Of a stretch of 64,000 nt of DNA, positions 324 to 62,164 are shown one piece after another. Numbering within the stretch: position 1 is the stretch's first letter; every line of letters begins with the position of its first letter. The notes below the pieces were generated by a model that ran no database searches, was not told where the DNA came from, and was given only the letters and a program-made list of their open reading frames with translations. The translations under genes were made by a program, and so were the position numbers. Where the stretch lies: positions 62,001 to 126,000 of IMG/VR virus record IMGVR_UViG_3300027896_005002. The stretch is one strand, 5' to 3'.

Positions 324-1175
324 ATGGAAAGTATAGACAATTGTCATAATTGTACAAAATGTATTTTACTAGATAGTAAATACTGTTATAAAGATTGTAA
401 GACTTGTAAATCAAAATTCTTATGCTTTACATTTAGTCGAAATAATGAAATTAGTATTTGCTTCGTTGACACAGCTGATAAAAATTATATTGGTACAAGG
501 AATTCAATACAATTGGGTTTATTAGATGAAGCAATTTTTTCAACATCTCAAACTATAGAAAAATATCTGAAATCTATCTTATTATATAATAATAATGACA
601 TCCGTAAAATGGGCGGAAGAAATGGCCATAATATTTTAGATTTGAAAAAAGAAGCACAAAAATGTTTAAATGGATTTGATTTAGATATAACTTATACTGT
701 AGGAAAAACAAAATATTCTTTTTATGAAATAATCGACAAAAATGTTGACCGTTATGGTATAATTTCAGCACCAAACTTTCCTTTTTTATCTTTATTAGAT
801 GATGCAGTTTTTAAAATTCGTCCTTATTGTAGAGACATAGATCTTGAAGCTTTAGTTTATAAAATAGATAAATTAGAAGTTTTGGAAATGATTCCAATTA
901 ATAAATCAATTGGAGGTTATTTAGAAGAAATCATTAAATTTAAACCGACATCGTTTAATAATAAACTTTCATTGCAAAAAAAATGTCTTTATTGGGAAAA
1001 TAAACATACTTTAGCAAGTGGAACGCAAACAATTCCAAACATAAAAAAATTTGGTGAACATTTATATTGGCCAAAATGTTCAAAATGTTTAAATAATTGG
1101 CGAGAAAATCATTATAAAGTAACGCAAATTCAAAAAGAATATTTAAAAACTTTAGACTATAAAATGTGCCTATAG
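324..1175 (+). CDS. HEPN-domain protein with Cys-rich N-terminus
   Basis: Start moved to ATG 324 (SD AGGAGA; the ORF-track start lies inside tRNA-Arg). Pattern ADKNYIGTR..AIFSTSQTIEKYLKS..GHNILDL..RY resembles the HEPN family. Confidence 0.6.
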   Translation: MESIDNCHNCTKCILLDSKYCYKDCKTCKSKFLCFTFSRNNEISICFVDTADKNYIGTRNSIQLGLLDEAIFSTSQTIEKYLKSILLYNNNDIRKMGGRNGHNILDLKKEAQKCLNGFDLDITYTVGKTKYSFYEIIDKNVDRYGIISAPNFPFLSLLDDAVFKIRPYCRDIDLEALVYKIDKLEVLEMIPINKSIGGYLEEIIKFKPTSFNNKLSLQKKCLYWENKHTLASGTQTIPNIKKFGEHLYWPKCSKCLNNWRENHYKVTQIQKEYLKTLDYKMCL

Positions 1176-5637: not shown

Positions 5638-5717
5638 TGCCCGTGATTGGAATCGAACCAACATTTTCAGCTTCCTTTACGATTATCTGTTTAGGAAACA
5701 GACTCGGCTACACGGGC
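5638..5717 (-). tRNA. non-canonical tRNA-Arg(CCT), rearranged D region
   Basis: GCCCGTG/CACGGGC, 8-nt linker, TCTGT-TTCCTAA-ACAGA, 23-nt segment starting TAATCGTAA, T-arm GTTGG-TTCGATT-CCAAT. Confidence 0.75.
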
Positions 5718-6656: not shown

Positions 6657-6739
6657 TGGCGCCCGTGATTCGATTCGAACGAACATTTTCAGCTCCAATT
6701 ACGATTAACTGCTTAGAAGGCAGTCTCGGCTACACGGGC
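6657..6739 (-). tRNA. non-canonical tRNA-Arg(TCT), rearranged D region
   Basis: GCCCGTG/CACGGGC-G-CCA, 8-nt linker, ACTGC-CTTCTAA-GCAGT, TAATCGTAA segment, T-arm GTTCG-TTCGAAT-CGAAT. Confidence 0.78.
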
Positions 6740-6824: not shown

Positions 6825-7616
6825 ATGGGTACTTCACAAGGTAACTTCAAAAGAAAACTTACTGGATTTTATGATAATGAAGATCGAAAAAAACAATGGA
6901 GTCAAGCTAGAATTAATACAAACAAAAATTCGGTCATTCTTAATCATAAAAAAACAATTCAGCAATTAACAAAATTAAAAATTAATGTTCAATGGTTTGA
7001 ACTACAATTGCAACAACATCGTATTACCACAATTACTAAAAATTTAAAATTACTTGACATTAAACATCCAAAACTAGCACTTAAATATTTAAAATCTTTA
7101 TTAGAGCCAAAACGATTAAAAGAAATTGCAAAAGAAAAACGAACATCTAAAACATCTGTCACACTTAAAAATCGATTGAGAACTGATATCATACTGAAAA
7201 AGAAATATATTAAAAATCTAACAAAGAGAAATCATCATAAATATCGATCAAAAGGTGAATTACGTCTCAAACATTGGTTACAAAAAACTTATCCTTACTA
7301 TAATTGGAAAAGTATACATTTAACTTATAACAATTCAATTTATGAATTCGATATCTATTCAGAACAATATGACGATTTTTTCATTGAATATAACGGCGCT
7401 TGTCATTATAAACAAATTCATAGTTTAGAAAACTTTCAGCGTATTCAATGTCGAGATGAACAAAAAATACAAATAATGAAAGAACTTAATAAAGAATTTC
7501 TAATCATCAAGGACAGCATGTCCTTTGAAGAACAAACAAAAACTGTGACAAAATTCTTTAATTTAAGTAGTAATCTTCAAATTAAAAAATTGGAGGTGCG
7601 GGGACACTTTATCTGA
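6825..7616 (+). CDS. free-standing DUF559/Vsr-like (EDxHD-type) putative homing endonuclease
   Basis: Basic N-terminal half, then SKGE..YEFDIY..FIEYNGACHY..RDEQK. Confidence 0.72.
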   Translation: MGTSQGNFKRKLTGFYDNEDRKKQWSQARINTNKNSVILNHKKTIQQLTKLKINVQWFELQLQQHRITTITKNLKLLDIKHPKLALKYLKSLLEPKRLKEIAKEKRTSKTSVTLKNRLRTDIILKKKYIKNLTKRNHHKYRSKGELRLKHWLQKTYPYYNWKSIHLTYNNSIYEFDIYSEQYDDFFIEYNGACHYKQIHSLENFQRIQCRDEQKIQIMKELNKEFLIIKDSMSFEEQTKTVTKFFNLSSNLQIKKLEVRGHFI

Positions 7617-8231
7617 TGTTTTCACACCAGTGTGGACTATCTCTTCATCCAATTGGATGATGGGCGCTAATAAAGGATTATTGATTGAGTTTCTCACCTT
7701 TTAGTCTCTGCACTTTCCAACCTACAAAACACTCTTTCAGTTGGCTTAGCTCAGGATTGCCATATCATTTTACTGATTTAGGGTTCCCTGAATTCACCCA
7801 TTTTCTTCATCAATTGTTACCAATTGAGTCAACCATTTTGATTGAACCCCGGTCCAGAAAGTTTTCCATGACAATTACTACATGTTTATTCTATTCTATC
7901 TTGAATACTCACTCCGTAAATAGACAAGCGTTCAATGAGTACTTCGTAAGTGTCACTTCGGTCCCCTTCTCTTTTACGCGTTCGGTTGTCCTATCCGTAT
8001 ATAAACAGTTCAAGTTGCTACGGCTCCGCTTAAACTTCGACCGCCTTTATTTAGGCAGCCATTGCTGGTGCCTTTGCGCACATTGCAGCGAACTGCAATG
8101 CGAACTGAGCACCGAAAACTGAACCAATTTTGTTGGCAGTTGTTGTTTCATTGGATGATTTAAGAGGCCAACCAATGAGTCCTCTACATGCAATTATCAC
8201 TTCACCCAATCTGTCGAAACCTGACACCCCC
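7591..8231 (-). ncRNA. ssrA: tmRNA split by a T-loop intron (exon1 7841-8231, exon2 7591-7604)
   Basis: 5' GGGGGTGTCAGGTTTCGACAG; acceptor GGGGGTG/CACCTCC with G3-U70; resume context ACAACT-GCC; tag ANKIGSVFGAQFALQFAAMCAKAPAMAA (8051-8137); T-arm CGGGG-TTCAAT|T-CCCCG. Confidence 0.92.
7605..7840 (-). mobile_element. ORF-less group I intron (IC3-like, 236 nt)
   Basis: P1 TCAAT/GTTGA with U-G splice-site pair; core motifs GGCAATCCTGAGC, TGCAGAGACT, AGATAGTCC; terminal G at 7605. Confidence 0.9.
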
Positions 8232-13353: not shown

Positions 13354-13569
13354 TAATTCACCTTGACCTTGATTTGTTTTTGTGTGATCCATCAACTATA
13401 TATCTATAGCGAGGACCATCTTTTGTGTAAATTATTTCATGATCCCGTGCATATTTTTTATCTGCTCTCAATCGTAAAAGTTCGATTTTATAATGACATG
13501 TTAAACAATTTTTCATAATAATGTTGTTCCCATAACCAGGCTTCTGTTTTATCTCTACATTTGTCTAAG

Positions 13570-13724
13570 CCCTCGACCCGTCCGTCATAGCGTTGCTCAC
13601 CCGCTAGGACTGTTTGAGGTTGCACCCTCGGAAGTGTAAACGACCAATTAAGTCTCCTTCCTTAAGCAATAGTGGCCTGAGTTTCCTCACCGATAATCTA
13701 ATATCATCGGCGCGTAGAGTCGGA
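13570..13724 (-). ncRNA. unassigned multi-hairpin structured RNA downstream of tRNA-Thr
   Basis: Closing helix CGACTC/GGGTCG around hairpins CCGATGAT/ATTATCGG, TGAG-GAAA-CTCA, TTAAG/CTTAA, GAGG/CCTC, TAGCG/CGCTA. Confidence 0.6.
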
Positions 13725-13742
13725 ACAACATTTTGAATCAAA

Positions 13743-19263: not shown

Positions 19264-19344
19264 TAGGAGAGGAGGGATTTGAACCCTCATCTGCCACATA
19301 CCGTTACGATTATCCGCCTTATAAGAGCGGCTCGGTACTCTCCT
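19264..19344 (-). tRNA. non-canonical tRNA-Ile(TAT), rearranged D region
   Basis: AGGAGAG/CTCTCCT, 7-nt linker TACCGAG, CCGCT-CTTATAA-GGCGG, ATAATCGTAACGGTA.., T-arm GAGGG-TTCAAAT-CCCTC. Confidence 0.75.
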
Positions 19345-25298: not shown

Positions 25299-25377
25299 CA
25301 GGAGCGAAGAGACTCGAACTCTCATTTTCAACCAAATTACAAGTATATGGTTTTGGAGACCACACTGTTACGCTCCT
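25299..25377 (-). tRNA. non-canonical tRNA-Trp(CCA), rearranged D region
   Basis: AGGAGCG/CGCTCCT-G, 7-nt linker, GTGGT-CTCCAAA-ACCAT, ATACTTGTAATTTGGTTGAAAAT, T-arm GAGAG-TTCGAGT-CTCTT. Confidence 0.72.
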
Positions 25378-27702: not shown

Positions 27703-27769
27703 ATGTCGTAATTGGATTTTAACCAATGTCTTTAGACAAAATGTGCTGACTTATTGCACCATACGACAT
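27703..27769 (-). pseudogene. tRNA-like remnant with collapsed anticodon arm
   Basis: ATGTCGTA/TACGACAT, D-arm GTGC/GCAC, T-arm ATTGG-TTAAAAT-CCAAT, only ~15 nt between D and T arms. Confidence 0.55.
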
Positions 27770-61482: not shown

Positions 61483-62164
61483 ACGACTCAAAGAACAAAG
61501 ATACAAAATAGAACGCAAAATTCTCCTCAAAATGTTTCCATCCCATAACACCCTACAGAGCATCGCCACACAACTCAAAATGAGCAGACAAGCCATGAGC
61601 TTCAAAATAAAATACTTAGGCCTAACAAACAAATGGAACGATCGTAAACAAGAAATTATAGATGCTAGACCTCCTAAATCACAATTACTCTCAGTATTGT
61701 TTTGTATATACTTTGTTCAAAACACAAATAAGAAATACTATGTCACTGCACATAATTTTTTACGTTGGAGAGAATATCATAGCCGCTTATTAAAAAAAAT
61801 ATTTCCAAACAAAAACTTACAAAAAGACTTCAACAAATATGGACCTGAATCTCTTAGAGTAAAAATCATAAAAGAATCTGCAGATCTTAAACAACTAAAA
61901 CTACTAAAGAAAACATTAATTAGAAACAATCTAAATTGCTATAACATAAGCATTCCTTTCCGGACTACAAAAGAACGATACATAGACACGATGTTATTAT
62001 CACCACTAAGAAAAAGCAAACATGCATACATCACGTGGAATAGAATAATCAAAAAATGGAAAGCACAACCAGTCAAAAATGGCAAACAATTCTATTTAGG
62101 CCATTTTAGCAAAGAGTTAGAAGCTAAAAAAATTGTCGATAAATTCTTTAAAGGATCCAAATGA
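61475..62164 (+). CDS. HTH + degenerate GIY-YIG-like + AP2-domain protein
   Basis: IYFVQN..KYYV..N.NLQKDFNKYG; C-terminal ITWNR..KKWKAQ..GKQFYLGHF..E.EA. Confidence 0.65.
   Translation: MDKRLKEQRYKIERKILLKMFPSHNTLQSIATQLKMSRQAMSFKIKYLGLTNKWNDRKQEIIDARPPKSQLLSVLFCIYFVQNTNKKYYVTAHNFLRWREYHSRLLKKIFPNKNLQKDFNKYGPESLRVKIIKESADLKQLKLLKKTLIRNNLNCYNISIPFRTTKERYIDTMLLSPLRKSKHAYITWNRIIKKWKAQPVKNGKQFYLGHFSKELEAKKIVDKFFKGSK

Follow-up and report, generated by a model that had tools for sequence, protein, structure and literature searches.

The DNA analysed here (the window) is a stretch of 64,000 nucleotides, positions 62,001 to 126,000 of the IMG/VR virus record IMGVR_UViG_3300027896_005002, a 416,029-bp record with 31% G+C from a freshwater metagenome, which is estimated to be 77% complete. 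On the minus strand, positions 25299-25377 of the window carry a 79-nt gene for a tRNA-like RNA with the anticodon CCA, in which the anticodon arm sits inside the D-arm instead of after it. The acceptor stem is formed by the 5' strand AGGAGCG (25371-25377) and CGCUCCU (25300-25306) with 7 Watson-Crick pairs, and is followed by the discriminator G73 (25299). The anticodon arm (25347-25363) consists of the stem GUGGU/ACCAU and the loop CUCCAAA, with the anticodon at 25354-25356, U33 and A37, whereas the T arm (25307-25323) has the stem GAGAG/CUCUU and the canonical loop UUCGAGU. Between the acceptor and the anticodon stem there are only U A and ACAGU, so that about 5 nt are found where the D-arm belongs, and a 23-nt segment, AUACUUGUAAUUUGGUUGAAAAU, occupies the place of the variable loop. 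No CCA end is encoded; the 3' trailer is AUUAUCAC, and tRNA-Glu follows. The gene lies on the same strand as its neighbors, 7 nt after tRNA-Met and 8 nt before tRNA-Glu, in a run that continues with Gly and Tyr.

The elements listed in the preliminary description of this locus that could be checked were all found in the sequence, namely TAAC after the acceptor stem (25370-25367), GTTG (25332-25329), TACTTGTAA (25345-25337), GAAAAT directly before the T stem (25329-25324), the anticodon and the discriminator. The Rfam tRNA model (RF00005) matched exactly these coordinates with 31.2 bits, marginally above the gathering score of 29, while the canonical tRNAs of the window scored 53-73 bits. The alignment to this model placed 4 nt where 15 are expected for the D-arm and a 20-nt insertion in the variable region. 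ARAGORN did not report the gene, and no Rfam 15 family other than tRNA matched it. It is the only Trp tRNA in the window and in the whole 416-kb record, although a canonical Trp tRNA could lie in the missing part of the genome.

Three other genes of the window, also on the minus strand, share this layout: Arg(CCU) at 5638-5717 (Rfam tRNA 38.5 bits), Arg(UCU) at 6660-6739, which was reported neither by ARAGORN nor by Rfam at the gathering threshold, and a gene with the anticodon UAU (Ile, reading AUA) at 19264-19344 (Rfam tRNA 39.6 bits). Pattern scans of IMG/VR, followed by a parser that required only the three standard stems and a GUA motif, returned over 120 distinct sequences with the same layout, mostly in phage contigs. 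Their anticodons were UCU (62), ACG (20), UCG (13), CCU (5) and GCG (2), all of them Arg, GAU (14) and UAU (9) for Ile, and CCA. A covariance model (R1) built from 124 of these sequences found exactly four strong hits in the 416-kb record, Arg(UCU) with 91.6, Arg(CCU) with 86.2, the Trp gene with 64.4 and the UAU gene with 59.6 bits, while the canonical tRNAs scored 29 or less. Run over 100 other phage loci, R1 revealed 123 distinct members, among which rare ones carry CUU, CAU and UCA anticodons. A second model (R2), built only from 134 hits in other phages and containing no window sequence and no CCA anticodon, scored the Trp gene with 65.2 bits (E 8e-13) at the same coordinates, and Arg(CCU), Arg(UCU) and the UAU gene with 84.5, 89.8 and 62.3 bits, respectively, against 27 or less for the canonical tRNAs of the window. 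This is far beyond chance, and membership is therefore independent of how the model was built.

Members of the family were also found in two cultured phages, an Arg(ACG) member in Vibrio phage D419 (OZ195672.1, 65929-66008) and an Arg(UCU) member in Pseudomonas phage Bitten (PV037721.1, 69066-69142). Both have an encoded CCA and both lie in unannotated gaps inside tRNA clusters, exactly where the tRNA locus-tag numbering of the records skips one number. In bacterial assemblies the members were always located inside multi-isotype tRNA arrays. A first Trp-specific pattern scan of IMG/VR returned chance hits, except for a class-II-like Trp tRNA in a locus designated L166, blastn of the Trp gene against 50,697 phage records gave no match, and the nine-base motif TAATCGTAA on its own was not enriched in the window (29 matches against 30 expected).

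The MAFFT alignment of the 124 sequences, which was not fitted to any structure and whose sequences had not been selected for these pairings, revealed compensatory changes in two short helices in addition to the acceptor stem (99.3% paired), the anticodon stem and the T stem, which covary across the family as well. In helix a, nucleotides after the acceptor stem (8-11) pair with the bases just 5' of AAAAU; the pair at alignment columns 10-54 reads G-C in 45 sequences, A-U in 26, U-A in 2 and C-G in 1, with 4 unpaired, and the pair at columns 11-51 reads C-G in 48, U-A in 15, A-U in 14 and U.G in 4, most of its unpaired cells coming from a shorter subtype that is misaligned by MAFFT. In helix b, nucleotides 12-14 pair with the three bases just 5' of a conserved UAA, with C-G in 122 and U-A in 2 sequences at columns 12-41, G-C 69, C-G 29, A-U 18 and U-A 4 at columns 13-40, and G-C 29, A-U 24, C-G 19 and U-A 5 with 43 unpaired at columns 14-39. 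Helices a and b are paired in 91.6% and 87.6% of cells, against at most 75% and 66% in 2000 shuffles, and for the whole structure 95.7% of cells are paired, against 61% when shuffled and about 40% when the partners are slid. Energy-based folding, by RNAfold on five genes and by RNAalifold on the 124 sequences, recovered only the three standard stems or gave unstable alternatives, so that helices a and b rest on covariation alone.

In the Trp gene, helix a is formed by U8, A9 and A10 (25368-25370) with UUG (25329-25331), where the U8.G and A9-U pairs never vary in the family and remain unproven. Helix b is formed by CAG (25365-25367) with UUG (25340-25342), giving C-G, A-U and G.U pairs. The connector A-UAC (25343-25346) links the anticodon stem to the 3' strand of helix b; its A may pair with U at 25364 and extend the anticodon stem, and the Arg genes have UAN in the same place. 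Between the two 3' strands lies the D-loop-like bulge UAAUUUGG (25332-25339), which carries the near-invariant GG, the presumed equivalent of G18 G19; UAA and GG are at least 90% conserved in the 124 sequences. The 5-nt connector AAAAU (25324-25328), which resembles the variable loop (positions 44-48), occurs in 87 of 101 Arg, 10 of 21 Ile and 2 of 2 Trp members.

These data support the main claims of the preliminary description, which proposed a fourth rearranged tRNA of Trp type, probably functional, with a linker that covaries with that of the Arg genes. Of its four TAAC/GTTG pairs, however, only three fit the family structure (U8.G, A9-U, A10-U), while the C aligns with the near-invariant C that pairs with the G just 5' of UAA and belongs to helix b, which had been missed (CAG/UUG here, CGA/UCG in the Arg genes). 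Its further argument, a TGG codon in a "leader 2", could not be evaluated, as this leader could not be identified, and TGG is in any case an ordinary codon here. Two alternative readings of the sequence were rejected. CCAAA in the anticodon loop can pair with UUUGG in the bulge, as can UUUCCU with AGGAAG in the Arg(CCU) gene, but UAAUUGG is the commonest bulge in Arg(UCU) genes too, so this match follows from the generic GG and does not indicate regulatory anticodon masking. No flanking stem exists that would make UAAUCGUAA a second anticodon loop (CGU).

Trp members of the family are rare, with three found. One of the two others (L346, positions 127-205 of this locus, on a 72-kb contig) has the identical acceptor stem, G73 and an encoded CCA, with helix b CAG/CUG, and scored 69.9 bits with R2. 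The other (L480, positions 2068-2145), which lies in a complete 289-kb phage and was in neither model seed, scored 54.9 and 57.5 bits. The third pair of helix a reads A-U in the window gene, U.G in L346 and C-G in L480. ARAGORN found 20 tRNAs and none for Trp in the 289-kb phage; however, the L480 copy has an A.G mismatch at the base of the acceptor stem and C73, and overlaps the 5' end of the next gene, tRNA-His, by about 5 nt. It may be decaying, and we regard it as weak support.

Several features of the family are those of working tRNAs. U33 is present in 124 of 124 sequences, position 37 is a purine and the T loop is canonical, while 58 of 126 members have CCA encoded directly after the discriminator, where 1 in 64 is expected by chance. 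Other features track the anticodon, as expected if synthetases read them. The base after GG is A in 101 of 101 Arg members, A20 in the D loop being in all likelihood a classical ArgRS determinant, whereas it is U in 19 of 21 Ile members and U in the Trp gene. The discriminator is A in 21 of 21 Ile members and G in the 2 of 2 aligned Trp members. The A1-U72, G2-C71 and G3-C70 pairs of the Trp gene, together with G73 and CCA, appear to correspond to the identity set of E. coli TrpRS. The 28 canonical tRNAs of the record cover most amino acids but lack Trp, Arg-UCU, Arg-CCU and Ile-UAU, which are exactly the four rearranged genes. The standard code fits, with long frames covering 80% of the genome, and the relevant codons are well used by the phage (AGA 20.9, AUA 31.1 and UGG 10.9 per 1000). 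No TrpRS, ArgRS or IleRS was found in the phage, whereas a CCA-adding-enzyme head domain is encoded at 211850-212236 of the record, which suits genes that lack an encoded CCA.

Hence, the gene is most probably that of a working elongator tRNA-Trp of a giant freshwater phage, although this function is inferred from comparative evidence alone, as only DNA runs hold the sequence. The acceptor-T half, which is read by RNase P, the CCA-adding enzyme and EF-Tu, is entirely canonical, and so is the anticodon arm, but the connectivity of the core is changed. The strand after U8 A9 (positions 10-14) does not form its own hairpin and runs straight into the anticodon stem, after which the chain returns through about three connector bases, the 3' strand of helix b, the bulge UAA-N(1-3)-GG-N, the 3' strand of helix a, U G and AAAAU to the T arm. 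A three-way junction is inferred to replace the four-way junction, with the acceptor and T arms stacked as usual and helix a, helix b and the anticodon stem forming one long arm of about 4 + 3 + 5 pairs plus a small internal loop, comparable to the D-stem, the 26-44 pair and the anticodon stem of a normal tRNA. As the bulge has the composition of a D loop (A A N N G G N) and the T loop is standard, the GG presumably docks on the T loop to form the elbow, with AAAAU playing the part of the variable loop. The RNA would be transcribed as part of a tRNA operon, cut out by RNase P and 3' nucleases, probably supplied with CCA by the phage's own enzyme, charged by host TrpRS and used to read the UGG codons of the phage. 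A tRNA with no D-arm at all was accepted by E. coli HisRS, EF-Tu and the ribosome without adaptation, the barrier in that case being degradation by PNPase (PMC11551756), and a rewired core is therefore plausible in bacterial translation.

Other explanations appear considerably less likely. Phage tRNAs have been proposed to counter tRNA-targeting defenses (PMC10264068), and the RNA might act as a decoy that soaks up or evades host tRNA-directed nucleases or other tRNA-binding defense proteins without being used in translation. In one bacterial array, a rearranged Arg(GCG) indeed sits beside a canonical Arg(GCG), which suggests that the fold itself brings something extra and that gap filling is not the whole story. 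A decoy, however, would not need features that track the anticodon or an encoded CCA in 46% of members, nor would it be expected to fill exactly the missing anticodons of a near-complete tRNA set, so that this reading is unlikely. Charging with another amino acid, for example Arg, with ambiguous decoding of UGG, could be considered since CCA is one base away from the Arg anticodon CCU and the family is mostly Arg; this is very unlikely, as the gene lacks the A after GG kept by all 101 Arg members, has an acceptor end that appears to be like that of bacterial tRNA-Trp, and long ORFs read well under the standard code.

An equally improbable alternative is a precursor that is cut and rejoined to give an ordinary cloverleaf, although disrupted and permuted tRNA genes exist in archaea and algae (PMC3978253) and a group I intron lies elsewhere in the window. 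The D-loop-like segment is located 3' of the anticodon arm, and removal of any single segment cannot restore the canonical order; no intron family matched the gene, the insert is only about 23 nt, and helices a and b covary in the unspliced arrangement, which would be pointless if that arrangement were transient. Least likely is a pseudogene that lost its D-arm through local damage. The failure of ARAGORN, the marginal Rfam score and the signs of damage in L480 would agree with it, but the same architecture recurs in more than 120 distinct sequences with compensatory changes in five helices, L346 shares the acceptor stem and carries G73 and CCA, and the gene holds a well-spaced slot in a tRNA operon.

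Compared with canonical bacterial and phage elongator tRNAs, including bacterial tRNA-Trp, the RNA retains the standard acceptor, anticodon and T arms, U8 A9, a GG dinucleotide and a 5-nt variable-like connector, but has no D hairpin between position 9 and the anticodon stem; the partners of the D-stem 5' strand lie 3' of the anticodon arm and are split by the bulge. The D-arm-lacking tRNAs, such as mitochondrial tRNA-Ser(AGY), nematode and mite mt-tRNAs and the synthetic mini HisT used in E. coli (PMC11551756), also have intact acceptor, T and anticodon arms, yet they are shortened and have lost the D-loop/T-loop contact, whereas this family, found in phages of bacteria and not in organelles, is full length (76-82 nt), keeps a GG-containing loop and a canonical T loop, and replaces the D hairpin with two covarying helices. 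The allo-tRNAs and other tRNAs with novel cloverleaves (8/4 and 9/3 acceptor/T branches; PMC5389517), likewise found by mining metagenomes and phages and carrying standard anticodon loops, change helix lengths within a normal cloverleaf order, while here the order of the elements along the chain is changed. Circularly permuted, split or intron-bearing tRNA genes (PMC3978253) are also missed by standard tRNA finders, but they are rearranged only at the gene level and mature into normal cloverleaves. Class II tRNAs with a long variable arm (Leu, Ser, bacterial Tyr) keep a normal D-arm, and the 20-23 nt placed by Rfam in the variable region of our gene do not form their own hairpin but pair back to positions 8-14. 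No description of this fold was found in the body of full-text literature that we searched, and we consider the family a new structural variant of tRNA, of which this gene is a rare Trp member.

Why the fold exists can only be hypothesized. The anticodons of the minor isotypes are one change from Arg anticodons (CCU to CCA, UCU to UAU), which suggests that the family began as Arg and spread by anticodon shifts. More speculatively, and on present evidence rather doubtfully, phages might have evolved and widely spread a second way to build a tRNA, still used by host synthetases, EF-Tu and ribosomes, whose rewired core escapes host factors that attack or degrade canonical tRNAs through the D-arm and core, such as defense nucleases or tRNA quality control, or equally the phage's own shut-off of host tRNAs; the Trp, Ile and other rare isotypes would then have arisen from Arg members by single anticodon changes followed by re-tuning of identity elements.

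All known bacterial tRNAs were stated in 2024 to be cloverleaves (PMC11551756), and this family would be a natural, widespread exception in bacterial viruses, with a fold that keeps the parts but changes their order. Since standard annotation silently misses these genes, as in the two cultured phages, phage tRNA repertoires, codon-supply analyses and "missing" isotypes such as Trp here are being misread. The family also gives a natural test of which features of the tRNA core are really needed by synthetases, EF-Tu and the ribosome, represents a possible new scaffold for orthogonal tRNAs, and offers a concrete hypothesis for the phage-host conflict over tRNAs.

In addition to the more common anticodons, rare members of the rearranged family were found in phage loci to carry other ones. 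These members (L319:440-527, L285:11003-11080, L263:6052-6128 and L332:2352-2431) carry the anticodons UCA, which reads UGA and keeps the Arg-type A after GG, CUU (Lys) and CAU (Met or Ile2), and an odd loop CCUGUAA. Interestingly, in the GenBank records of both Vibrio phage D419 (locus L474, 2494-2573) and Pseudomonas phage Bitten (locus L475, 2486-2562), the rearranged Arg tRNA lies in an unannotated gap, and the tRNA locus-tag numbers skip one value exactly there (0009 to 0011, and 0006 to 0008); a prediction may have been made and then dropped.

Unusual tRNAs of other kinds were also revealed. A 66-nt tRNA-like gene at window 27703-27768 (-), scored at 45.2 bits by Rfam but missed by ARAGORN, has acceptor, D and T arms, but only about 6 nt are present where the 13 central positions of the anticodon arm should be. 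This is a different kind of odd tRNA in the same cluster. Furthermore, a phage tRNA-Trp(CCA) at about 708-790 (+) of locus L166 combines a normal D-arm with a long variable arm capped by a GUAA loop, and a class-II-like Trp tRNA is itself unusual. In the 289-kb phage (G006), ARAGORN reported two tRNAs with abnormal anticodon loops (L518:17713-17788 and L526:3436-3511), a four-base 'tcta' and a two-base 'tt', which may represent frameshift-type or defective tRNAs.

Other RNA elements were also detected in the window. A 209-nt RNase P RNA-like element at window 13522-13730 (-) lies next to tRNA-Thr and scored 61.3 bits against the archaeal RNase P model (E 9e-17 locally), which is below the gathering score of 84; it could be a miniaturised phage RNase P RNA. 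At window 7613-8224 (-), a tmRNA gene (7839-8224, 80 bits) overlaps a group I intron (7613-7854, 91 bits) by 16 nt on the same strand, which may indicate a phage tmRNA interrupted or followed by a self-splicing intron. Outside the window, the phage encodes a 503-aa ORF with a CCA-adding-enzyme / poly(A) polymerase head domain at 211850-212236 (-) of the virus record (G000:C1; PF01743, 94.7 bits).

The rearranged tRNAs were also represented in a bacterial chromosomal array. In an Armatimonadota MAG (locus L511, on a 1.36-Mb contig), a canonical tRNA-Arg(GCG) and a rearranged Arg(GCG) (7303-7379 and 7398-7476) lie 18 nt apart, and both sit in an array that holds four rearranged members and 15 canonical tRNAs.
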